From Paraphysomonas bandaiensis (taxonomy: Eukaryota > Protista > Chrysophyceae), in the NCBI GenBank assembly GCA_965644295.1, contig CBFFRP010000563.1, forward strand, positions 1-64,000: a stretch of 64,000 bases of DNA. Direction: 5' to 3'. A program made the position numbers and the translations under genes. The notes under the pieces were generated by a model that was not told the origin of the DNA, searched no databases, and was given only the letters and a program-made list of their open reading frames with translations. The number at the start of each line of letters is the position of its first letter. Position 1 is the stretch's first letter. Below, piece after piece: positions 1,512 through 64,000 of the stretch.

Positions 1512-2769
1512 GTGCACAGGTGATGTGGGGTAGGATAGTCTTCTCACAACACTCTTCACTTAACTTCCTCTTCTTACTCTTTACTTCGCTACTTCTTAAC
1601 TTTCAACTCAACTACAATATCAACTTTCACTATTATATCTAAAACTCCATATCCTTCTACCTATATCCCCATAGTTAGTTCTAGAAGTGGTTTCCCAGCC
1701 ATAAATAGCTAGTTTTCTACTTCCAGAAATAATCATATAGAAATCCCTTAACATCCTGCTATCTACTCCTATATCATCCTACAGAATACCTACGTATACC
1801 ATCATAATACTGTACGGGTTACCATAAACGTCCGTTACATCCGTATATACGGGTAGTTCCGGTACACTCCAACCCTATATCTGGCCTTAATACTCGTATC
1901 TTCTAATCTAATCATAACTACCATTTATTCTAACCTTTCCAACTATTCTGTGAATAGTACATCATGATAAAATACACACTTCAGTATACAACAACTAATG
2001 ATTTCACAAGACACAACAGTGCTCGTAAATAATTATGTAAAAGCCTTGTTATTACGTGATAGGAAAAGCCTTATAACTACGTTGTTATAGTGTAGACTTA
2101 GATCTTCGGAACGAGAAAAAATGCTGCATCGTTCGTTGTGACGAAGATTGGGTGCGCTCCTGTGAGTAGCATTTAGTCAATTCACAAGCGTTCTTGAAAA
2201 AATTGTAGAGAATAGCAGGAGCATTTTCACAACTACTTTGCATGGTAAGTCGTATACAACACGCATTGCATCATGAAATTGATTCAGAGTTACTGTAGAT
2301 GAAGAGGAAGTAGTATCAACACTCGTGTCAGTTAGATCATCATCTACCGTAGCTGTTAGTGGAGAAATAGAAAAAGCTTCGAAGCGCTCCTTGGCTTCCT
2401 CGATTTCAGCTTCTACGACCATAGGGTCACTCTCAACATCACACCACAATCCCACAGCACTGGCTCACTGCTCATCACTAAAAGAACTCATCTCATTAAT
2501 TCCTAAAGCGATATCAGGCACATCCGCAAGCTCCTTTACTTTGATACACTCTTCCACACTTTACGTAGTCAACCAGATGAAACACGAGAAGACTTCAGTG
2601 TCTTAATTGTCATTTCGCAGTCCACCAGGATCGGATGAGGTCTGAATACACTAATCAGGCATAGTCTTTAGTCTTCTGCTTCCAATAGAATCAACTCAAG
2701 TCGCATTGATTAACTTTATAATGAACTTAATGAACTCTTCTTTTGATTCTTGTAGTCTGGAGATCGGCA

Positions 2770-2909
2770 GTCAGCATCTTATTTTTCGGGAATAAATTGA
2801 AGCAAAAATACTCTATGCAACTGTAGTATAACTACGGTTAGAATACATATTATTGTTGTCTCAATATTAGAGGCATATTTGAACAAAAATATACCAAGGA
2901 TGCCGATAC
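2770..2909 (+). repeat. Dispersed ~140-bp repeat, copy 1
   Basis: Shares ATAACTACGG..AGAATAC..TTGTCTCAATATTAGAGGCATAT..GAACAAAAAT..GGATGCCGATAC with 53098-53229 (+) and 61847-61987 (-). Confidence 0.85.
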
Positions 2910-3068
2910 GTTGTGCATATCGATTTCATCGATTAGTTCATCGTTTATTTCATCGAAAAATCATCGTTTTTTCATTAAAAAGTCACTTTTTTTCACTTTT
3001 CACTGAAAAAACAATGATTTTTCGATGAAATAAACGATGAACTAATCGATGAAATCGATATGCACAAC
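2910..3068. repeat. Foldback/MITE-like palindrome, ~65-bp arms
   Basis: GTTGTGCATATCGATTTCATCGATTAGTTCATCGTTTATTTCATCGAAAAATCAT... is mirrored by its reverse complement ending ...GATATGCACAAC. No clear TSD. Confidence 0.85.
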
Positions 3069-3230
3069 CACCTGCTGTGTATGTTTCAATTTCAAACAAT
3101 TCAAATGCAAATATTGCAATTGATATTTATTAATCTTGCACATGTTGATCAGTTCTAGCCTACCATAGCCTTCCATAGCCTTAATGCTTGCATCTTCGAT
3201 CCTGATTTTGCAATGTAGATGGTGGTTTGG

Positions 3231-4352
3231 TCATATGAGAGTTAGGCTTCTTGCTGCTGTAATTGATATCGTGCAGCCCGAGTCTAGAATGCTAAAATCC
3301 TGCTTCTCGTGTTCTGTATGTAGGACATGATTGTCTGTGATCATCCCAGAGAATGCACTGCAGTCATTGTCATCGTTTGGCCCCTCATCGTCATAGTCTT
3401 CCAGTCTTAAGTTCGAATCCCGATGACTGTTTCTTGGGTATTTTGATGATGTGTTCTTGGAGTGATGCCCTTTCCCTCTTTTGTCGTCGTTTCGTTTGTT
3501 TGTGGACTTCTGCAACTGTTGGATGTATTCCCAAGAGTGCTTGCACTTAACTTCACGCGACTTTGCACTTGTAGCTCTGGGCTTGTTGAATTTCTTGTGC
3601 TTTTGCTTTTTCGATAGACGGGGGTTAAACGGCTGTTTGCCTGTTGAGCTGTAGTTTGTGCTATCCCGTTTGGTTTCCGTATTTTGTGATAGTAGGGAGC
3701 CTACAGTGGAATGCTCGAATGCTCTCAATCTTCTTATAATTATCATCGCTTTATAATCATCAATTAGGTTCATTTGAAGGTTGATTGCCAGGTCCTTATA
3801 GTTCTGTTTCTCATTTTGAGACCATCCCTTGTGGCCGTTTGAAGCGAGCTTTAATCGCAATTTTTTGACTTCGTCCAGAAATTGATTGATTGTTTGAGTT
3901 TGCTTGATTTTGATTAATTGCAGTTGGCCAATGAGGTCAGTTATCGTGTCGTTTGAGGTTTTGTCTTTGAAATGCTTTTCGATCTCTGACCATGCCCTTT
4001 TTCCATCTCCTTCAGGGACTGTTTCGATAATACCCTCTGCTTCCTCGTTTTGGCCAATCACCGCGCTGGATATAAGTGACCATAGGTAATTGTTGCCCTC
4101 CTCGAAATACTGCATATTTTCGTCGTAGACGTTTTTTATGTATTGGTAGTCCTCTTCTGTTTCATCCTCTTGACGTATAGGCTCCTCTGGGGCATCGTTT
4201 CTTGGGATGTATACTATCTTAGGCTTACGAAACAACCAGGCCCTACTTTTCTTCTGCCATTTTGAGAAGTTCTTAGCGTCGAAGGGTGGCATGGAATCCT
4301 TCCTCGTGTCCGATGAATCGGAGTTATCGTAACTGTTAGTTTTAGAACTCAT
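3231..4352 (-). mobile_element. Ty1/copia gag-protease remnant (truncated)
   Basis: Copia gag-like FDAKNFSKW and GDGKRAWSEIEKHF segments and aspartic protease motif ILDSGCT. Frame breaks after the protease, and no integrase or RT follows. Confidence 0.8.
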
Positions 4353-4767: not shown

Positions 4768-7700
4768 TCACACCGCTTGAGAATGGTAGTTTCCATCTGA
4801 CACCTCCTGAGTCGCCACTGCCACTCTGATCCCCTCCTTCTCCCTCATCATTCGCATGCCAATAATGCAGCACACAGACAGCACAAGAACGACACAGACA
4901 CATATCAATGCCACATATAAAGTGGACAAAGAAGTGGACGAAGATGAAGACGAAGAGGGGTTACTGGTGGCCCCGGACGTGGACACACATGAGCCCAGCA
5001 TAGATGGAAGAAATTCGCCACTCTCAGTGCAATAAGCAACCTGGCCATCAACTAGCACATAGTCATCACCACATACTAAAGTCAATGTGTCTCCGACGAG
5101 CATCCCAGAGGCTTCCAGGTAACCGCCTGTGTAGTTAGTGCTATTCGAAACATCATTAACAGAACAAGTAATCACAACAGTTTCTGAAACGACTCTTTCA
5201 GTATCAGCACTCTGAACTGAGTCCACAGTTGCCAAAGCAAAGCTCTCGTCCCCAGTTGCCAAATAATCAAAGATGCACTCAGATACACACGAACATAGTA
5301 CTTCTGCGGGGCTTAAATCGGTCACATTTCCGGTGTGTAGTAAAGCCAGACAATCAGTGTTGGATAACGAGTCTGAGGAGTCACTCAACATGGTAGGGTT
5401 GAAATCAGGGCGCTGAAAGGACGAGAAAGGCTGCGATGTCGTATAATGGAAGGCGCTATGGGATTCATCCTCTATTGCCCAGGACATCCCAAAGGTATAG
5501 TGAATATCGTGGGATGAGGAATTGGACGGCAAGACAGACCCATCTTTGGCAGTAAAGTCGTCTTCGGGAAGGCCATTGTACACCCCATAGAGTCCCCAAG
5601 TTTTGTGCTGCATCGAAGTGTGCACTGAACACTGCACCGCCAATCCATTTTTCTTGAGAATAACATTCAAAATCATTACTCCTGGAATCGATACAATGAC
5701 CTCAGCCATTGTTGTCGTATTCATGGTGACTACCAATTCACCGATGTCGATAGACGGAATCTGAGCACTAAAGGTGACTGCAGCCCCGTCTATCCGCACC
5801 AGCAACTGTGAACCAAGTCGACTAATTTGAACTTGCGTTTCCCAGACACCTGATGTTGCATTGGCCCCAGCCAGCGGTAGGCCAACAGCAATCGCTGTAA
5901 TTTCTGATGCTCCGGATGACCCCACTTCTTCCATTCTGGATTGGACAACAATAAAAGTATTGTTATCCGACATATCCCACGCTCCCTGGCCAGTCATGTG
6001 AGTGCCAATCATGTAGTGAAAATCGCCCACGCCGTTGAAAATGTACTTCATATTATCAACGCTGACGATGTGAGGGTCTCCAAAGGCAAATCCAGGAGTA
6101 TTAAATTGTGCATCACAGTTACTTTCGATAGGGCGCAAGTACAAATACACAGGTAAATAAAACTTTTTCAAGTGATAGTAGGGTAACACATCCCAAACAA
6201 AATGTAAGAGTGTCCCAATATAGGCGAAGTACTTGTAATGATATCTGTCTGCCGTTCCTCCACCAGTTGGGCTTGTGTTTAAATTTCCATTTGCTGAATA
6301 GCAACATTGATTGCTAGATCCATCCACACTGGGATTGGCTTGTCGGTAACAAACTGCACTGCCCTTGTGAAGACTACAGCTTGACCCTTTCCTACAGCCA
6401 GGATCCTCCTTCCATAGCTCCCCTCGAATTTGCTGTTCTCGACAAGGACACCTCCTTAAGTGTCTGAAGTGATAATAGTACTTGTCATGATATTCCTTTG
6501 TAACTGTGTACCCCCTAATCTGAACGGTCGCGTCGTCATCTTCAGGGATGTGATGCAAACGTCGTCCATTGTACTGACTGAATTGGCTGCGACTTTTGCG
6601 GGGCGCAGTAATTGCGGGTTCGATATTCTGATGTACTTCCAGGGACAACGATGACGAAGTGGACCCGAAAACAAAGCATGACATTTCCGATCTAAGAGCG
6701 ATGTAGTGCTGTGTGGATGTAGTGCCGCTGTTGCTGTTGTTGAGAAATACACCATAATTCTCCAAATAAGCTACAGGATCAATATGCGAGTCGCCTTGAA
6801 CGAGGAGACTGGTTGGCACCAGCTCAAAATACCCCACAAGCTCTACTCCACCATTAAAAACTGCTGCCACATCCCCACCTGAAATGGACAACGAGCCCGT
6901 ATTGGGAAAACTTGACCCCACCAGAGTTGCATCAAATTCAGTTGCATGCTCAGCGTCGTCAGCTGACACAAAAACAAGTCGCAAGGCCAACTTATCAGCA
7001 CCCCATACCCTGTCAGCATCCCAGCTCAGTGATATTAACAATCCTTCTGCATCGTCAGAAATACATATGGGTGCATCACTTTCGTCACTGGTTACTACTT
7101 GAGTAAGAAGCGGTGGGGTCGTTTCTGTATGGGCCGTGTAATAGACGGTATTGAAAGACACGGTGGAAGTCTCATCACCACCAGCCTGGTCCATAATATC
7201 GATTCGGACGGTGTTGGAGCCCTGGCGCCCCATATAAGGAACATTACACACAACTTCCGTGGCGCTGATACGTACAGCTTCGACTGCAACAATATTCTTG
7301 TCCTCAGAGGTGGAAAAGTAATTAACGGTGGCGAATGAGCATGTGACAAGCGCAGTTTCGCCAAAACAAGCAGCCGATGTCGCACGTATTGTCATAATTT
7401 CTCCACCCACAAAATTTCCGATTACTGGGGAAACAAACATTTTGGCATCGTGAGAGCAATTTCCGCTATTAGAAACGTCTTGCACTGAAGCACTACCCAC
7501 AGAAAACATAAACACCCCAGCAAGGCCCACATTGGACATGCTATCGATATCAATTGCATGAGGAACATTAGGGTCTGAGGTGTTGTCACGAGGAGAAAAG
7601 AGGGAATGAAACCTCTCTCGATCCCCAGCATCCAAGCCAACAGAGACATAATTGTCGCCATAACCACCTATCCACTCGATGGACTCATACAGGAACAGCA

Positions 7701-48400: not shown

Positions 48401-51400
48401 TTTTATAAACGTATCTACTACTTCAAATCGACTGTCTGTACGCGCCTCGTGCGAATGAAGGTGTTTTGATAGACTGACATTGAGGAGACCAATGTCATCA
48501 TACAAACTCGCGTTGAAATCCGCCAATTGTGTTGTGAAAGAACCATTCAAATCAGAAATTCTGTATAAAGTATCTTGAGAAGTTGCCACAACACTATCTG
48601 CATGCTGCTCGAGAACAGAAGACAAATTGGTCACACTGTCATTCAACATTGATGTATACTTTGCGATACTATCATGAGTTCTGATATCAGATTCATTCAG
48701 TGCGGCTTGTAGCATGGTAGACACACTTAATAACTCTTCATTTAACGTTGTCAACGAAGTATTCACTTCATTTCGAATTGAGTTTTCAAGGGTAGATAAG
48801 TTGGACAGTAATTCAACTTCCACTTCTTGAAACTTTAGTCTGGACAAGTTCTTAAAGTCAGATAATGAGACATTCACGTCTCCAATTACTCGAGCAAGTA
48901 TTGAATTACTTCTTGCAATAGCAGCCGAAGTATTGGATGCTAGTTCGTCAATATATTCGTTGGTTTCATTCAGAGCTGCATGAAGCAGAGAAAAATTTAG
49001 AGATGCCATTTCAGTTGCATTTCCAACTTGCTCCTGCAAGAAACTGATGTTTCTTCTTGCTCCTTCAAAATCATTCTCTACACGATCTTTCAACACAATC
49101 AATTCAACATTGATACCGTTAGTGAGATTATCTTGTAACTCCGACAATTGTGTTTGGGTATGGTGAGATTGGTTCCTGTAGAGTTCTGTCATGGAATCCG
49201 TGTTGCTCGTCATATACTCTAACAAGGTATCACGAAGATTGGTAAGGTTTCGCTGAACTTGATCAGATAACTCCTCTGTCGCAGTGGTGGTAAGTAGAGC
49301 AGACTCATTTCTAAGATTCTCAAAGTCGCTATGAATTCTCGATATGGAACTCTGGACTTCTCCAACGGTACTGTTAACTAATTCCAGATTAGCTGTGGAA
49401 GAATTCGTGTACGCGTCCAGTTTGCTTGAAATATAATCGCGTATCGTTTCCCCAAGGGCGGATATGTTCTGGTAGCCTTCAGAGCGCAGTCTTCAAACAA
49501 GACATCATAATGCAATATTATAAGATTGTAAGAGAGCACGTACTCAGTAATATTTGTTTGTATTTCATCGCGTAGGGAACTTTGAATTTGTGTACTCCAA
49601 GCTGGTAATACCTCAAGCTGTAGATTTTCAATTGTAGAATTCATATCGCTTACTGATTTAACTATATCCTCAAGAGAAAATGATAACACCAGAACCTCCT
49701 CCATAACGCTGCTATTCATTGATTCCACCATTGCCTCCGATGTAGTTCTAAAAGTTGCCAAATTTTCCATTACTTCGGTAGATAATCCTTCCAGTTGTAG
49801 GCTTATTTTCGAAGAAAAATCAGTGAAACTCGCTTGATTGTTCTGCAATAACTCATCCAGTTGTGAAGCTGTGGATGACTGAATACTATCAACTCTAGCG
49901 GAAATCGGCTGTATCAGTGTAGATTCAATATAATCAGAGATGGCCTGCAGAGTACAAAATCATTGAATACTATTCATAACAGTCAATAAGTAAATGTCAA
50001 TACAGAATAAAACAATGCCATGGCAATATGTACACTATCCATCGATGAGTGCACACGAATCCCTTCTGAAGATTCGCCACTCAGAATATAGGCGGAATTT
50101 ATATATATGTATATGTACTAATTCAGCATACCTGTTGAGCAGATGCTTGTGCATTTGCTACTTTTTCACTTACAAAGAGCAAGCTGTCAACAATGGAGAG
50201 CATGTTGCTTGACACCTGTGAATGCGTAATTATCACTATCGTACATGATGTGTACTATGTATCAACTATATAAATCACTGCATATGTGGTGGACGAATAT
50301 ATACTGCATCGCTAGACAACAATAGTACTGAATTCATTTCTCAATACAGTATACTGTCGCTCATTATCCATTTATGGGTGGTATGTAACGAACATACCGA
50401 CGGGTGCCCGGCATTCGACCGCTCTTTGCATTCCTCAGGAGTAGCAGTTGTGTCAAACACACCATCCACAATACAAAGATTGTATGCCACCTATAAATTA
50501 TAATACATGTAACCTCGGCCGTACTAAAGTTGTGATTAAAATACTACCTTTCTAGAAAGCTCCCTATCGAGTACAACATCTCTGAATGCCGCATTACCAC
50601 TCATGCTAAATAGGTAATAAGGACTCTCGTCAGGAGCGTAAATTTGAATCACCGTCTTCTCATTGTGATGCAAGGAAAGTTTCCCCTCATTCATCATTGT
50701 AATCCAACGGATCAATCCCTTGGCCTTAAAAGCAAATGACATACATTACTTTGTACGAAAACTTATATGTCATATTAGGAGGAATGAGTTCCGGTTCATG
50801 AATGCAGTAAGTATAACACGAATGGGTTGTACTTACGAATTCAATATGCGTTGGTGAATACTTGAGTGTCCCACCACTAGTCACGATTTCGAGTATATCA
50901 AGATCGATTTTCAAACCATTTCCATGAACTCGTGTCATACGAGGTTGCTTGGTGTCGAGGTTGAATGAGGAGCCCTTGACCATACCACCACCTATAACAA
51001 AACAGTATCACTACTAAGTAGTGCATATATATGACTGTATGTGCATATATATGACTGTGTGTGTATATATAAGACTGTATGTGTATATATATGACTGTAT
51101 GTGTATATATATGACTGTATGTGTATATATATGACTGTATGTGCATATATATGACTGTATGTGTATATATATGACTGTATGTGTATATATATGACTGTAT
51201 GTGTATACATATGACTGTATGTGTATATATATGACTGTATGTGTATATATATGACTGTATGTGTATATATATGACTGTATGTGTATATATATGACTGTAT
51301 GTGTATATATATGACTGTATGTGTATATATATGACTGTATGTGTATATATATGACTGTATGTGTATATATATGACTGTATGTGTATATATATGACTGTAT

Positions 51401-53101
51401 GTGTATATATATGACTGTATGTGCATATATATGACTGTATGTGTATATATATGACTGTATGTGTATATATATGACTGTATGTGTATATATATGACTGTAT
51501 GTGTATATATATGACTGTATGTGTATATATATGACTGTATGTGTATATATATGACTGTATGTGTATATATATGACTGTATGTGTATATATATGACTGTAT
51601 GTGTATATATATGACTGTATGTGTATATATATGACTGTATGTGTATATATATGACTGTATGTGTATATATATGACTGTATGTGTATATATATGACTGTAT
51701 GTGTATATATATGACTGTATGTGTATATATATGACTGTATGTGTATATATATGACTGTATGTGTATATATATGACTGTATGTGTATATATATGACTGTAT
51801 GTGTATATATATGACTGTATGTGTATATATATGACTGTATGTGTATATATATGACTGTATGTGTATATATATGACTGTATGTGTATATATATGACTGTAT
51901 GTGTATATATATGACTGTATGTGTATATATATGACTGTATGTGTATATATATGACTGTATGTGTATATATATGACTGTATGTGTATATATATGACTGTAT
52001 GTGTATATATATGACTGTATGTGTATATATATGACTGTATGTGTATATATATGACTGTATGTGTATATATATGACTGTATGTGTATATATATGACTGTAT
52101 GTGTATATGTATGTGTATATATATGACTGTATGTGTATATATATGACTGTATGTGTATATATATGACTGTATGTGTATATATATGACTGTGTGTGTATAT
52201 ATATGACTGTATGTGTATATATATGACTGTATGTGTATATATATGACTGTATGTGTATATATATGACTGTATGTGTATATATATGACTGTATGTGTATAT
52301 ATATGACTGTATGTGTATATATATGACTGTATGTGTATATATATGACTGTATGTGTATATATATGACTGTATGTGCATATATATGACTGTATGTGTATAT
52401 ATATGACTGTATGTGTATATATATGACTGTATGTGTATATATATGACTGTATGTGTATATATATGACTGTATGTGTATATATATGACTGTATGTGTATAT
52501 ATATGACTGTATGTGCATATATATGACTGTATGTGTATATATATGACTGTATGTGTATATATATGACTGTATGTGTATATATATGACTGTATGTGTATAT
52601 ATATGACTGTATGTGCATATATATGACTGTATGTGTATATATATGACTGTATGTGTATATATATGACTGTATGTGCATATATATGACTGTGTGTGCATAT
52701 ATATGACTGTATGTGTATATATATGACTGTATGTGTATATATATGACTGTATGTGTATATATATGACTGTATGTGTATATATATGACTGTATGTGTATAT
52801 ATATGACTGTGTGTGTATATGTATGTGTATGCAGCAGCAGTTACCTCCTCCTCCGAGTCCATTCCCCATCATAGAGACGCCTGACATACAAGGTCTGCAT
52901 GCCAGTAACAGCACACCTACTATACATAAATGCATATACATACTTATATTTCAATTACTTTAATAAATTGATTGCAAATGTATTGAATGGAATCTCTGCT
53001 TGCAATACATACATATGTATGTGTATATATACAGAGCTTAACGTAATATCTTGCCAGTGTATACACACACACAACATACATACACACACCTACCGTCTCA
53101 T
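45448..53101 (-). CDS. Large secreted coiled-coil glycoprotein, multi-exon (>1500 aa); 5' end uncertain
   Basis: Hydrophobic leader (VGVLLLACRPC) spliced across the 20-bp array intron to GGGMVKGSSF..., long open exons 45902-49920 with heptad-like periodicity, and dense N-x-S/T sequons. Confidence 0.7.
51022..52830. repeat. 20-bp minisatellite (ATGACTGTATGTGTATATAT) x ~90, inside an intron
   Basis: Direct reading. On the minus strand it is flanked by a GTAACT donor (~52844) and a TTATAG acceptor (~50992). Confidence 0.95.
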
Positions 53102-53229: not shown

Positions 53230-53968
53230 CAGTACCTCCAACTGCCTCAAAACTCCATACCCTCAAGAAAGTAAAAAACCTGGGTATTCATAGAATTTGG
53301 AATAAGAGATGAAACAAAAAAGACGTTTTTCTACAAAATATGAGGTTTTTGTAAGAATAATGTGTGTAAGAAATTCCTTCGAAAGTAACGTTGCACATAC
53401 AGCAGTGTGCAATAAATGGGATTTTATGTGTCTGTATATTACAAATGAAGGGTTTATGTAATCATAATCCTAATAATCCATAGTTTCTATGAAAGTATGA
53501 TATATAAAGTGGAGATTTTTATGTGTGAGTATGATGGTGTTAGTTACAATACTCTTCAATCGTATGAATTGTTACGTATGCACTCCAATGCTCGTAAAGC
53601 TATAATTCCATTCATTATATTGAAAGGTTGATACTTGCTTATAAAGTACCGGTTTCTGTATAGGGAACGAGAGCGAGGGTGCATTAACTCAAAACCCCTG
53701 ATTTAAAAGCATTAAAACCTCGATATTTCTATAAAACAGAGGGTTTTCCCATCTGTACGTACGACGTAGTTGTTGTTACACCAACAGCAGCTTCCTTCTA
53801 CGCAAAACCCTTGATTTATATATTAAAACCATGAAATGCCATTAAAGCTTGTTTTTATATGAATGGCAGGTGTGTCATAGTGCTCATATGATAATATTTA
53901 ACGGTTAAAATCACTCCATTAGCATCTTATTACATCATTCATTTAATATACTCACTATCTAATCAATC

Positions 53969-56900
53969 ATGGTGGCACAAAACAATGATCTTAATGGTCC
54001 TAAGAGTATTGGTATGATAATCTTATTGTTTAGTAGCATTATTGCTGCAACTGCCAATACACTCCTATTTAAGATTGCATTGAATGCATTTTCATCACCA
54101 ACAACGAATTATGGTTTCTTTGTATCTCAATTTTCTACATTATTATATACACTTCAAGCTGTATTAATATCATGCATTATGATGTGGAGAGAAAATATTT
54201 CAATTAAGGATTTATTAACTACGAATCAGCCCGTATATCTCTATATGGGGGGATTAGATGCGGCAAGTGCAACTATTGGTGCTATTGCAGGTGCAGATAC
54301 ACCTGGAGAAATGCAAACTATTATAAATCAAATGATTATTCCATTAACAATGATTGGTGCCTTTTTATTTCTTGGATCACAATTTGAGACTTATCAAATA
54401 TGGGGAAGTGTATTGATATTATTTGGTGCTGCTGTCGCCTCCAGTGATTATTTATTTTACCCCACTCATCATGATGAAGATTCTAATGGTGGCATTGCAT
54501 TGCCCGTGGCGATTACATTGTACGTAATTTCAGTGGTTCCTTCTGCTCTGTCGAATATTTACAAGGAAAGGAAGATGAAGGAATTGGACATGAACGAAGT
54601 ACACACATCTACCATTGTCTCCTTTTGGCAACTTTGGATTGGATTTGTATTTTTACCGCTGCTCTCTCTTCCGTCGTTAGGTATCATTTTGTCGTGAATC
54701 ATATTGTCTGTAACGTGTATATTAGGTGGCTTGACGTATCATCAAATGACCTCTCAGCTCTCAGATGGCTTTACTTGTTTTATGGGGACCAACCCCAATG
54801 ACCCTGACCATGACTGCTCCAATTCAGCAGCTATACTACTTGTTTACATTGTCCTCAATTTCATATATAACATCATGATGTTAGCGATAACCAAGCGAGG
54901 CAGTGCTGTTCTATTGGTGATTTCTCAGGTGTATTTTGTCTTCGGTGTGTATTCCATCTGTATTGGTACATTTCGTTGCATTACCTTCTTTATTTATATA
55001 CGCTAATATTTATCTTCTTTAGGCCCTCTCTCTACCACTAACAAACATAGCGTTTACTTTGACACCTCTTATGGGTGATGATGCCGAGCCGCTATCAATA
55101 ATGGATTTAGTAGGACTGGTTCTGGTTTGCATTGGCTTTTTGGCCTATAGCGGGTTCGGTTTTGCTTCAAACTTTATGGTAGTCCAGGTAATAATCTCTT
55201 TTGTAACCAATCAGACCACGTGCACAATTTATTGATATTACGTATATATAGGGACCGCCTGGTCAGATGGCATATGCTCACTTCGAAGACCATGACGAAG
55301 TGATTGTATCAACGAAAGTGGCCAGCGACCCTCAGGAGCTTGCAGATTTCATTGTTGGATCTATACTTCAAAAACAGATATCACGGGAGCAAAGCTTAGT
55401 CAACCCAGGTATATGATACAAACAAGAGATTTATTGTCCTACAAAAGCAGGACTAACATGTTACCATTACGATATAATCCCAGTTATAGCTGGCGTTGTA
55501 AATTCTAATGAGAACTTCGTATATGTGGTCAATGTATAGTTTGATGATGTGGCATGTGATGAGTGATAGTATTATCTGTCAATCCGCTGATATCTCTCAC
55601 GAGAATCTGACGAGAGTCTACTACATATCATTCTGATGCTGCATTGTTATTCCTGATGGTTATTATGATTTCGATGATGACTTTGTGTATGTGGTCAATG
55701 TATAGTTTGATGATGTGGCATGTGATGAGTGATAGTATTATCTGTCAATCCGCTGATATCTCTCACGAGAATCTGACGAGAGTCTACTACATATCATTCT
55801 GATGCTGCATTGTTATTCCTGATGGTTATTATGATTTCGATGATGACTTTGTGTATGTGGTCAATGTATAGTTTGATGATGTGGCATGTGATGAGTGATA
55901 GTATTATCTGTCAATCCGCTGATATCTCTCACGAGAATCTGACGAGAGTCTACTACATATCATTCTGATGCTGCATTGTTATTCCTGATGGTTATTATGA
56001 TTTCGATGATGACTTTGTGTATGTGGTCAATGTATAGTTTGATGATGTGGCATGTGATGAGTGATAGTATTATCTGTCAATCCGCTGATATCTCTCACGA
56101 GAATCTGACGAGAGTCTACTACATATCATTCTGATGCTGCATTGTTATTCCTGATGGTTATTATGATTTCGATGATGACTTTGTGTATGTGGTCAATGTA
56201 TAGTTTGATGATGTGGCATGTGATGAGTGATAGTATTATCTGTCAATCCGCTGATATCTCTCACGAGAATCTGACGAGAGTCTACTACATATCATTCTGA
56301 TGCTGCATTGTTATTCCTGATGGTTATTATGATTTCGATGATGACTTTGTGTATGTGGTCAATGTATAGTTTGATGATGTGGCATGTGATGAGTGATAGT
56401 ATTATCTGTCAATCCGCTGATATCTCTCACGAGAATCTGACGAGAGTCTACTACATATCATTCTGATGCTGCATTGTTATTCCTGATGGTTATTATGATT
56501 TCGATGATGACTTTGTGTATGTGGTCAATGTATAGTTTGATGATGTGGCATGTGATGAGTGATAGTATTATCTGTCAATCCGCTGATATCTCTCACGAGA
56601 ATCTGACGAGAGTCTACTACATATCATTCTGATGCTGCATTGTTATTCCTGATGGTTATTATGATTTCGATGATGACTTTGTGTATGTGGTCAATGTATA
56701 GTTTGATGATGTGGCATGTGATGAGTGATAGTATTATCTGTCAATCCGCTGATATCTCTCACGAGAATCTGACGAGAGTCTACTACATATCATTCTGATG
56801 CTGCATTGTTATTCCTGATGGTTATTATGATTTCGATGATGACTTTGTATATGTGGTCAATGTATAGTTTGATGATGTGGCATGTGATGAGTGATAGTAT

Positions 56901-59515
56901 TATCTGTCAATCCGCTGATATCTCTCACGAGAATCTGACGAGAGTCTACTACATATCATTCTGATGCTGCATTGTTATTCCTGATGGTTATTATGATTTC
57001 GATGATGACTTTGTGTATGTGGTCAATGTATAGTTTGATGATGTGGCATGTGATGAGTGATAGTATTATCTGTCAATCCGCTGATATCTCTCACGAGAAT
57101 CTGACGAGAGTCTACTACATATCATTCTGATGCTGCATTGTTATTCCTGATGGTTATTATGATTTCGATGATGACTTTGTGTATGTGGTCAATGTATAGT
57201 TTGATGATGTGGCATGTGATGAGTGATAGTATTATCTGTCAATCCGCTGATATCTCTCACGAGAATCTGACGAGAGTCTACTACATATCATTCTGATGCT
57301 GCATTGTTATTCCTGATGGTTATTATGATTTCGATGATGACTTTGTGTATGTGGTCAATGTATAGTTTGATGATGTGGCATGTGATGAGTGATAGTATTA
57401 TCTGTCAATCCGCTGATATCTCTCACGAGAATCTGACGAGAGTCTACTACATATCATTCTGATGCTGCATTGTTATTCCTGATGGTTATTATGATTTCGA
57501 TGATGACTTTGTGTATGTGGTCAATGTATAGTTTGATGATGTGGCATGTGATGAGTGATAGTATTATCTGTCAATCCGCTGATATCTCTCACGAGAATCT
57601 GACGAGAGTCTACTACATATCATTCTGATGCTGCATTGTTATTCCTGATGGTTATTATGATTTCGATGATGACTTTGTGTATGTGGTCAATGTATAGTTT
57701 GATGATGTGGCATGTGATGAGTGATAGTATTATCTGTCAATCCGCTGATATCTCTCACGAGAATCTGACGAGAGTCTACTACATATCATTCTGATGCTGC
57801 ATTGTTATTCCTGATGGTTATTATGATTTCGATGATGACTTTGTGTATGTGGTCAATGTATAGTTTGATGATGTGGCATGTGATGAGTGATAGTATTATC
57901 TGTCAATCCGCTGATATCTCTCACGAGAATCTGACGAGAGTCTACTACATATCATTCTGATGCTGCATTGTTATTCCTGATGGTTATTATGATTTCGATG
58001 ATGACTTTGTGTATGTGGTCAATGTATAGTTTGATGATGTGGCATGTGATGAGTGATAGTATTATCTGTCAATCCGCTGATATCTCTCACGAGAATCTGA
58101 CGAGAGTCTACTACATATCATTCTGATGCTGCATTGTTATTCCTGATGGTTATTATGATTTCGATGATGACTTTGTGTATGTGGTCAATGTATAGTTTGA
58201 TGATGTGGCATGTGATGAGTGATAGTATTATCTGTCAATCCGCTGATATCTCTCACGAGAATCTGACGAGAGTCTACTACATATCATTCTGATGCTGCAT
58301 TGTTATTCCTGATGGTTATTATGATTTCGATGATGACTTTGTATATGTGGTCAATGTATAGTTTGATGATGTGGCATGTGATGAGTGATAGTATTATCTG
58401 TCAATCCGCTGATATCTCTCACGAGAATCTGACGAGAGTCTACTACATATCATTCTGATGCTGCATTGTTATTCCTGATGGTTATTATGATTTCGATGAT
58501 GACTTTGTATATGTGGTCAATGTATAGTTTGATGATGTGGCATGTGATGAGTGATAGTATTATCTGTCAATCCGCTGATATCTCTCACGAGAATCTGACG
58601 AGAGTCTACTACATATCATTCTGATGCTGCATTGTTATTCCTGATGGTTATTATGATTTCGATGATGACTTTGTATATGTGGTCAATGTATAGTTTGATG
58701 ATGTGGCATGTGATGAGTGATAGTATTATCTGTCAATCCGCTGATATCTCTCACGAGAATCTGACGAGAGTCTACTACATATCATTCTGATGCTGCATTG
58801 TTATTCCTGATGGTTATTATGATTTCGATGATGACTTTGTGTATGTGGTCAATGTATAGTTTGATGATGTGGCATGTGATGAGTGATAGTATTATCTGTC
58901 AATCCGCTGATATCTCTCACGAGAATCTGACGAGAGTCTACTACATATCATTCTGATGCTGCATTGTTATTCCTGATGGTTATTATGATTTCGATGATGA
59001 CTTTGTGTATGTGGTCAATGTATAGTTTGATGATGTGGCATGTGATGAGTGATAGTATTATCTGTCAATCCGCTGATATCTCTCACGAGAATCTGACGAG
59101 AGTCTACTACATATCATTCTGATGCTGCATTGTTATTCCTGATGGTTATTATGATTTCGATGATGACTTTGTGTATGTGGTCCATGTAATGTATTGTTGT
59201 TGTTTTTTTTCTAAATTTTTTTGTGCAGTAGATGATGAGCGCTCTCTTCTTGTTTCGAATGATGATTCTTCGAATCCATTGGAGGCGAGTACGGCGGCTT
59301 TAGATGTGTTAAAGCAAGCCACTGTGATTGTTGAGAAGCATGTGAGGGCTCTTCAAAGAGGGGTAACTGCTACTCACATGACCACGCCAGAGATTATGCG
59401 AAGATACAACACAGTTACATCGTCGCCGCATACAGGCAATAAAATTACTTCGCACAATTCTTCGAAGACTAAAGATTATAATTACGGTAGTATAGAAATG
59501 CCACTGCAGGAGTAA
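53969..59515 (+). CDS. CRT-like (chloroquine resistance transporter family, DMT superfamily) transporter; exons 53969-54680, 54726-54928, 55023-55187, 55252-55408, 59229-59515
   Basis: About 10 TM segments with LDA..TIGAIA..TPGEMQTIINQMIIP.TM, PSALSNIYKE, GFTCFMG.NP and YNIMMLAITKRGSA motifs. The phase-1 donor at 55409 matches the phase-1 acceptor at 59228. Confidence 0.85.
55519..59182 (+). repeat. 166-bp tandem array, 22 complete units, each carrying a box C/D snoRNA; located in the last intron of the CRT-like gene
   Basis: GTGGTC anchor at 55525, 55691, 55857 ... 59177 (3652/166 = 22). Units appear identical except one G/A variant in the spacer. Confidence 0.95.
55551..55640 (+). ncRNA. 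Box C/D snoRNA (SNORD110/snoR14-like guide for 18S rRNA Um); first of 22 copies, repeating every 166 bp
   Basis: C box GTGATGA 55556-62, guide ATCTGTCAATCC 55574-85, D' CTGA 55587-90, TCTC/GAGA internal hairpin, C' TGACGA 55608-13, D CTGA 55633-36 and terminal stem GGCA/TGCT. The guide is the reverse complement of the conserved 18S GGATTGACAGAT. Same strand as the host gene. Confidence 0.88.
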
Positions 59516-62066: not shown

Positions 62067-62353
62067 ATGAAAGATTTTAATAAAACTATTAATAAAAAAC
62101 GTAAATTATCATTCTTAAGATCAACAGGTGTGTGTATGTGTGTATATGGAGAGATGGAGGGGTATGAGTGTAATTGTTGATTAATGCAGCTATGAAGAGA
62201 CTGAAAACATCAGAAACAAATCAAAGTCATGAAGAAAAACAATCAAATCCATATTTAAAAGAAGTTTTAAAATTAAAAAAAACTATCAAGAATTGGGACT
62301 GTTTATTCAGTGCAGATGCAGAGAGACGCATGGAAGACTGGATCCGTATAGAT
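62067..62353 (+). CDS. First two exons of an unknown gene (62067-62127, 62190-62353), continues beyond the window
   Basis: MKDFNKTINKKRKLSFLRST-A-MKRLKTSE...RRMEDWIRID, with a phase-consistent GT-AG intron, a GTAAGA donor at 62354 and NLS-like KKRK. Confidence 0.55.
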
Positions 62354-64000
62354 GTAAGATACATGTGCACTATACACTATATATGTATATGTATGGAAGA
62401 CTGGATCCGTATAGATGTAAGATACATGTGCACTATACACTATATATGTATGTATGGAAGACTGGATCCGTATAGATGTAAGATACATGTGCACTATACA
62501 CTATATATGTATATGTATGGAAGACTGGATCCGTATAGATGTAAGATACATGTGCACTATACACTATATATGTATATGTATGGAAGACTGGATCCGTATA
62601 GATGTAAGATACATGTGCACTATACACTATATATGTATGTATGGAAGACTGGATCCGTATAGATGTAAGATACATGTGCACTATACACTATATATGTATA
62701 TGTATGGAAGACTGGATCCGTATAGATGTAAGATACATGTGCACTATACACTATATATGTATGTATGGAAGACTGGATCCGTATAGATGTAAGATACATG
62801 TGCACTATACACTATATATGTATATGTATGGAAGACTGGATCCGTATAGATGTAAGATACATGTGCACTATACACTATATATGTATATGTATGGAAGACT
62901 GGATCCGTATAGATGTAAGATACATGTGCACTATACACTATATATGTATATGTATGGAAGACTGGATCCGTATAGATGTAAGATACATGTGCACTATACA
63001 CTATATATGTATATGTATGGAAGACTGGATCCGTATAGATGTAAGATACATGTGCACTATACACTATATATGTATATGTATGGAAGACTGGATCCGTATA
63101 GATGTAAGATACATGTGCACTATACACTATATATGTATATGTATGGAAGACTGGATCCGTATAGATGTAAGATACATGTGCACTATACACTATATATGTA
63201 TATGTATGGAAGACTGGATCCGTATAGATGTAAGATACATGTGCACTATACACTATATATGTATGTATATGTATGTATGGAAGACTGGATCCGTATAGAT
63301 GTAAGATACATGTGCACTATATATGTATATGTATGGAAGACTGGATCCGTATAGATGTAAGATACATGTGCACTATACACTATATATGTATATGTATGGA
63401 AGACTGGATCCGTATAGATGTAAGATACATGTGCACTATACACTATATATGTATATGTATGGAAGACTGGATCCGTATAGAGGTAAGATACATGTGCACT
63501 ATACACTATATATGTATATGTATGGAAGACTGGATCCGTATAGATGTAAGATACATGTGCACTATACACTATATATGTATGTATATGTATGTATGGAAGA
63601 CTGGATCCGTATAGATGTAAGATACATGTGCACTATACACTATATATGTATATGTATGGAAGACTGGATCCGTATAGATGTAAGATACATGTGCACTATA
63701 CACTATATATGTATATGTATGGAAGACTGGATCCGTATAGATGTAAGATACATGTGCACTATACACTATATATGTATATGTATGCATGGAAGACTGGATC
63801 CGTATAGATGTAAGATACATGTGCACTATACACTATATATGTATATGTATGGAAGACTGGATCCGTATAGATGTAAGATACATGTGCACTATACACTATA
63901 TATGTATATGTATGGAAGACTGGATCCGTATAGATGTAAGATACATGTGCACTATACACTATATATGTATATGTATGCATGGAAGACTGGATCCGTATAG
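62330..64000 (+). repeat. 61/63-bp minisatellite (~27 units to the window end) made of the exon 3' end plus 5' splice site
   Basis: Unit ATGGAAGACTGGATCCGTATAGAT|GTAAGATACATGTGCACTATACACTATATATGTATATGT. The first unit overlaps the exon. Confidence 0.95.

Follow-up and report, generated by a model that had tools for sequence, protein, structure and literature searches.

Is a tandem repeat that fills one intron of a protist gene a satellite, or a set of RNA genes? The question is raised by a stretch of Paraphysomonas bandaiensis DNA (GenBank assembly GCA_965644295.1, contig CBFFRP010000563.1, positions 1 to 64,000 of the forward strand; the window, 64,000 nucleotides in all), in which units of 166 bp are arrayed within the gene for a CRT-like transporter. 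The original prediction, made from the letters alone, had read these units as 22 genes for small nucleolar RNAs (snoRNAs) of the box C/D type, in the sense of the host gene, all guiding methylation at one site of 18S ribosomal RNA (rRNA). Our analysis leads to much the same answer: the array probably comprises 22 functional gene copies, all identical, of a single box C/D snoRNA, a counterpart of snoR14/SNORD110/snR82/CD44 and its sole source in this genome, which would stem from recent amplification or homogenisation of one intronic unit and would raise the snoRNA output per transcript.

The regularity of the array is nearly complete. Tandem Repeats Finder delineated it with a period of 166, 22.1 copies, 99% matches, and 0 indels, and the anchor GGCATGTGATGA was found 22 times at a spacing of always 166 bp; together with the located boxes, this bears out the predicted number and orientation of the units. 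The 90-nt snoRNA core is 100% identical in 22/22 copies, all with boxes, guide, and stem intact. Seventeen units are identical over their whole length, four have one spacer-base change, and unit 1 has two, the variation being confined to the spacer at column 8 (G/A; units 1, 9, and 18-20) and column 5 (unit 1). Genome-wide searches revealed no match to the spacer outside the array and no copy of the snoRNA beyond the 22 in the 62.5-Mb assembly. The array is the genome's sole source of the guide for the 18S site, U1226. The single other match to the snoR14 profile genome-wide (contig C314, 24.2 bits) is without the guide and without box D, and was read as chance.

The layout of the unit is that of a complete canonical box C/D snoRNA (Table 1). 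Boxes C and D are combined with a terminal stem, GGCA/UGCU, which extends in the fold to ~9 bp (GAUGUGGCA / UGCUGCAUU), and the internal D' and C' boxes as well as an rRNA antisense element of at least 10 nt, the further sequence features of the class, are all found. Record 12 of X9, which is probably an RNA run, is an assembled 196-nt contig of the unit and is no evidence of a mature RNA.

Table 1. Coordinates of the host gene, the tandem array, and the elements of snoRNA copy 1 in the window.
Feature	Position	Strand	Remarks
Exon 1	53969..54680	+	Start codon 53969; PF08627, E 3.8e-35; X9 record 11; joint 54676/54722, GT..AG at cut +4
Exon 2	54726..54928	+	RNA contig joints; PF08627, E 7.9e-08; 66-84% identity to relatives
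Exon 3	55023..55187	+	RNA contig joints (X9, X16); 80-85% identity to relatives
Exon 4	55252..55408	+	Donor CAG/GTATATG (slash, exon end); X9 record 11 and X16 record 1 end at 55408
Intron 4	55409..59228	+	3820 nt, GT..AG; contains the entire array
Exon 5	59229..59515	+	C-terminal tail and stop; identical to RNA contig loose ends; weak homology to relatives' tails
Tandem array	55514..59188	+	22.1 units x 166 bp; unit = 90-nt snoRNA + 76-nt spacer
snoRNA copy 1	55551..55640	+	Boxes; Rfam snoR14 alignment; terminal stem in fold
snoRNA copies 2-22	+166 each; last = 59037-59126	+	Repeat spacing
Box C, GUGAUGA	55556-55562	+	Copy 1
D' guide, AUCUGUCAAUCC	55574..55585	+	Copy 1; antisense to 18S GGAUUGACAGAU; one nucleotide before D'
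Box D', CUGA	55587-55590	+	Copy 1
Linker D'-C'	16 nt	+	Holds a short UCUC/GAGA stem
Box C', (C)UGACGA	55607-55613 (UGACGA 55608-55613)	+	One departure from UGAUGA
D guide, CUACUACAUAUCAUU	55618..55632	+	Copy 1; second antisense element
Box D, CUGA	55633-55636	+	Copy 1

The target of the D' guide was located in the organism's own rRNA. The canonical 18S gene of the assembly (L020:891-2686; 1796 nt; 1773 bits to RF01960) contains GGATTGACAGAT, with which the guide forms 12 Watson-Crick pairs in a duplex scan (positions 2-13 upstream of D'). Position 5 of the duplex lies opposite U1226 (GGA-Um-UGACAG), the first U of the site, in agreement with the prediction from the position-5 rule. This duplex is the sole match for both guides in the organism's 18S, 5.8S, and the pieces of large subunit (LSU) rRNA that were reached. 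By our arithmetic, a random 12-mer would match 18S with a chance of ~1800/4^12; a match between a 12-nt guide next to a CUGA and a known conserved methylation site of the organism's 18S is far beyond chance. For the D guide, no duplex of at least 10 bp was found in 18S, 5.8S, LSU model positions 1-476 and 669-1451, and a 2391-3399 fragment, a search that covered LSU pieces only, with most of the LSU missing or scrambled in the assembly. Genome-wide, the complement of the D guide shows no excess over a control pattern.

The assembly has many truncated or internally deleted pieces of ribosomal DNA (rDNA), on eleven contigs (C68, C188, C196, C420, C437, C438, C516, C525, C543, C551, and C653). 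Examples are an 18S that covers the model from end to end in 1227 nt, a piece of LSU fused alongside an 18S, and a stretch of 542 nt that takes in LSU model positions 2391-3399. The rDNA loci fetched by the target-pattern search and Rfam scans include no complete LSU. The fragments could be either a product of mis-assembly or real dispersed rDNA.

In Rfam, no family reached its gathering score anywhere in the window. With permissive settings, the best match is snoR14 (RF01280, clan CL00076; 20.5 bits; E 0.19 on 511 bases), aligned over its full length (model 1-84), with the guide and boxes C, D', and D in agreement. The predicted hit to the SNORD110/snoR14 family was hence obtained as to the family and missed as to the score, which lies under the gathering score of 40; because of this, the RNA is filed here as a putative functional counterpart of the family and not as a member. 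The relationship, put forward in the original prediction, agrees with published assignments: Neurospora crassa CD44 is an intronic snoRNA with a D' guide for 18S-Um1227, its homologues are Schizosaccharomyces pombe snR82, Arabidopsis snoR14, and human HBII-55, with none in Saccharomyces cerevisiae (PMC2780460, Table 1), and human 18S-Um1288 is assigned to snoRD110 (PMC8677024). The P. bandaiensis RNA resembles snoR14, SNORD110 (HBII-55), snR82, and CD44 in its box C/D structure, the D' guide UCUGUCAAUCC-N-CUGA, and the same conserved U of 18S (Um1227, Um1288, and here U1226), and CD44 also in being intronic. It differs from them in the score of only 20.5 bits, in a lineage-specific D guide for which no target was found, and in having 22 identical tandem copies versus one to three. 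Yeast snR55, which was also considered, is not a guide for the U1226 site: the position served by snR55/U33 is a different one, Um1265 in N. crassa (PMC2780460).

A pattern scan of metagenome contigs, in which the guide was fixed by the pattern itself, gave the same combination of C box, guide, and D' at 119 or more environmental loci (at least 119) from many eukaryote lineages, and the D guide differs by lineage among them. At three of these loci (L099, L102, and L114), the same D' guide is accompanied by a D guide ending in CCUCUAAGAAG, which is antisense to a further conserved part of 18S (ACUUCUUAGAGG, the site of U61/SNORD61). In snoR14/SNORD110-type RNAs, the second guide seems to have been swapped between lineages.

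The host open reading frame on the + strand encodes a CRT-like transporter (Pfam PF08627). Contigs of four public runs (assembled, Logan) were placed on 53900-56400, a region consisting of the left flank and five units; marine metagenomes are among the runs that contain the locus. Introns 1-3, with lengths of 45, 94, and 64 nt and GT..AG ends, are seen in two contigs, one of 1589 nt from X9 (probably RNA) and one of 434 nt from X16 (the polyA metatranscriptome of a separate study). Both contigs then jump from 55408 to TAGATGATGAGCGC... / TAGATGATGAGCGCTCTC..., which is the window sequence from 59229, the acceptor side of intron 4 being seen via the loose-end sequence of the contigs. The junction 55408/59229 is found in both, and therefore intron 4 is real and removed in one piece, with exactly the borders predicted. 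The frame is kept across the exon 4/5 junction, and the five exons amount to 1524 nt or 508 codons. Intron 4 is 40-85 times as long as the other introns of the gene; the distance is 142 nt from the donor to the first box C, and 102 nt from the end of the last copy to the acceptor. As in an intronic cluster, the 22 snoRNA genes lie in one spliced intron in the sense of the host, but they are all identical and not of different species. No internal exon within the array is present in the mRNA contigs, which join exon 4 straight to exon 5, although rare isoforms could escape such contigs.

Every spacer (55680-55700 in the first) also has the sequence GTGTATGTGGTCAATGTATAG, with a 5'-splice-like start (GTGTAT/GTATAT) and a 3'-splice-like end (TATAG). 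These sites are not used in the RNA contigs; cryptic or recursive splicing may take place inside the array.

Copy number was cross-checked in two independent DNA-like runs filed under other organism labels, with the reservation that contig word depth is a poor measure of it: in X5, the word depth is 3615-4005 in the unit contigs but 105.8 in the flank (~34-38x), and in X8 it is 37.9 in the unit contig and ~2.6-4.2 in the flank (~9-15x). On either side, the array continues into unique flank, on the left in X5 record 2 and on the right in X8 record 10. Many copies are probably real, and their number probably differs between strains.

The orthologous position in relatives, a comparison suggested in the original prediction, is empty. 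Among the relatives fetched in searches with single exons, the nearest (57-65% identical in exon 1) have CRT-like genes in which exons 4 and 5 are essentially contiguous and no copy of the guide is present; relatives closer than this were not found. A CRT-like host was seen at none of the at least 119 environmental guide loci, of which 112 have one copy, six have two, and one has three, counts to be read with the collapse of repeats in short-read assemblies in mind. Taken as they stand, these sequences would make the intron, the place of the snoRNA within it, and its amplification alike lineage-specific. The description of the array as very unusual accordingly holds across eukaryotes, with a maximum of three copies at the environmental loci, but not within the genome itself, in which a profile search for U14 (RF00016) gave 58 matches, of which contig C434 has 57, most of them spaced by ~255 bp. 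A U14 copy from C434 has the hallmark CCUUCCUUGGAUGUCUGA, and an array of ~57 U14 copies in the same genome is confirmed. The same kind of search with SNORD59 (RF00273) gave no match in this genome.

On the reading that we prefer, RNA polymerase II (Pol II) would transcribe the copies within intron 4 of the CRT-like pre-mRNA, whose splicing is observed, and Snu13, Nop56, Nop58, and fibrillarin would assemble on each C/D kink-turn of the nascent intron. Trimming from the two ends of the intron would free the outer copies only, and an endonuclease would therefore have to cut the spacers before exonucleases trim to the protein-protected ends, leaving RNAs of ~90 nt. In plants and yeast, polycistronic snoRNAs are released by endonuclease cuts in the spacers. 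The D' guide, which pairs with 18S GGAUUGACAGAU in silico, would then direct 2'-O-methylation of U1226. The uniformity of the copies could reflect recent tandem amplification of one intronic unit or homogenisation, and the likely effect would be more snoRNA per host transcript, with nothing specific to the transporter. Raised snoRNA output per transcript in an array-prone genome is the most economical reading of the amplification.

Several points weigh against this reading. The last copy alone lies as far from the 3' splice site (102 nt) as is conventional, and structure in the spacer that would mark a cleavage site is not significant (two-unit fold, z = +0.27 versus shuffled sequence). The Rfam score is below the gathering score, as described above, and the word depth that speaks for many copies is a poor gauge of their number. 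The discrete ~90-nt RNA and the methylation of U1226 are predictions from sequence. Finally, unrelated satellites share the window, which shows that tandem amplification is common here with or without snoRNAs, and the amplification of the snoRNA unit may be neutral.

Neutral expansion is a serious rival, even if a fairly unlikely one. The array would then be a passenger satellite, amplified passively, from which one or a few copies mature (e.g., the last, nearest the branch point) while the rest are degraded, and its copy number would be non-adaptive. The near-zero divergence of the units implies a very recent expansion, the depth ratios of ~11 and ~36 in the two runs suggest quick turnover, and the same window holds arrays of 20 bp x 91, 63 bp x 26, and TATG x 127; the position of the last copy, alone at ~100 nt from the 3' splice site, and the lack of evident spacer structure would fit as well. 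On the other hand, boxes, guide, and stem are intact in every copy, polycistronic processing of snoRNAs is established in plants and yeast, and U14 is a second snoRNA arrayed in the genome, suggesting a multi-copy processing pathway or selection for dosage.

Reading the array as 22 working genes may be extended to the lineage as a whole, as a tentative proposal that we hold to be possible but on balance doubtful. One snoRNA per intron would have been swapped for homogeneous arrays, both in single introns of modestly expressed genes and between genes, kept uniform by concerted evolution, with a strain-variable copy number tuned to ribosome production. If so, an efficient splicing-independent pathway that cuts at least 22 small nucleolar ribonucleoproteins (snoRNPs) from one intron would be needed.

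It is very improbable that the array mainly acts in cis, controlling the host transporter through splicing speed or nuclear retention, or titrates the C/D core proteins; the sink for these proteins coupled to transporter expression, as originally proposed, found no support. In favour are the length of the intron, 40-85 times that of the gene's others, and the possibility that the assembly of 22 snoRNPs on a single intron slows its splicing. However, the U14 array elsewhere in the genome means that nothing ties such arrays to this transporter, the CRT-like intron is the sole source of a conserved housekeeping guide, and two RNA assemblies contain the mRNA in fully spliced form. Just as improbable is that the assembler expanded the repeat at a locus with far fewer units: the copy count is that of the assembly, cross-checked by assembled contigs alone, but the unit contigs are many-fold deeper than single-copy flanks in two independent runs, both edges of the array are attached to unique flanks, and the spacer variant is ordered along the array (units 1, 9, and 18-20) as in a resolved long-read assembly.

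The RNA is ordinary, and its arrangement is a variant of those in intronic clusters, SNORD115/116 arrays, and reiterated snoRNA genes of protists. Intronic snoRNA clusters reportedly exist in rice and Drosophila. The resemblance to them lies in several snoRNA genes within one spliceosomal intron, implying cutting of the spacers. Such clusters contain few and mostly different snoRNAs, whereas one snoRNA is repeated 22 times here, with identical spacers and in a satellite-like manner. Mammalian SNORD115/SNORD116 and SNORD113/114 are likewise tens of near-identical tandem C/D copies on one Pol II host transcript. Their copies have an intron each, flanked by repeated non-coding exons, and are not known to target rRNA; in P. 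bandaiensis, by contrast, a single intron of a protein-coding gene holds all copies, no internal exon is seen in the mRNA contigs, and the guide is a canonical one for rRNA. Among protists, Euglena has multi-copy U3 genes (PMC2784804). The reiterated snoRNA genes of Euglena and trypanosomatids are similar to the present case in that a protist attains dosage through tandem reiteration as a genome-wide habit. They are transcribed independently or as polycistrons and are not known to be intronic in protein-coding genes, and their units usually hold several different snoRNAs.

What is new is the organisation of the genes, that is, 22 identical satellite-like copies in one intron of a protein-coding gene as the sole source of a guide. 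If all copies mature, one splicing event would yield 22 snoRNAs, which end-trimming by exonucleases cannot do, and a spacer-cutting pathway would thus have to exist. The locus offers a natural system for studying how polycistronic snoRNAs leave introns, how snoRNA dosage is set under a host that is no highly expressed housekeeping gene, and how the uniformity of tandem arrays is maintained. In practical terms, it cautions that what looks like a 'satellite' in a protist genome can be a set of essential RNA genes.

Other repeats were noted in and beyond the window. A SNORD24 match above the gathering score (53.2 bits; C188 (L026), 5610-5685, minus strand) has a tandem repeat as its immediate neighbour (L026, 4000-5582; unit of 322 bp, at least 4.9 copies), and an rDNA fragment lies at a distance of a few kb. 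In the window, a 20-bp unit, GTGTATATATATGACTGTAT, is repeated ~91 times at 97% identity (51021-52825) shortly upstream of the CRT-like gene, and this array yields long spurious open reading frames on the minus strand. The TATG x 127 array lies in the same 64-kb window, and the 63-bp satellite (at least 26 copies, 95% identity) occupies 62330-64000 and continues past the window end.

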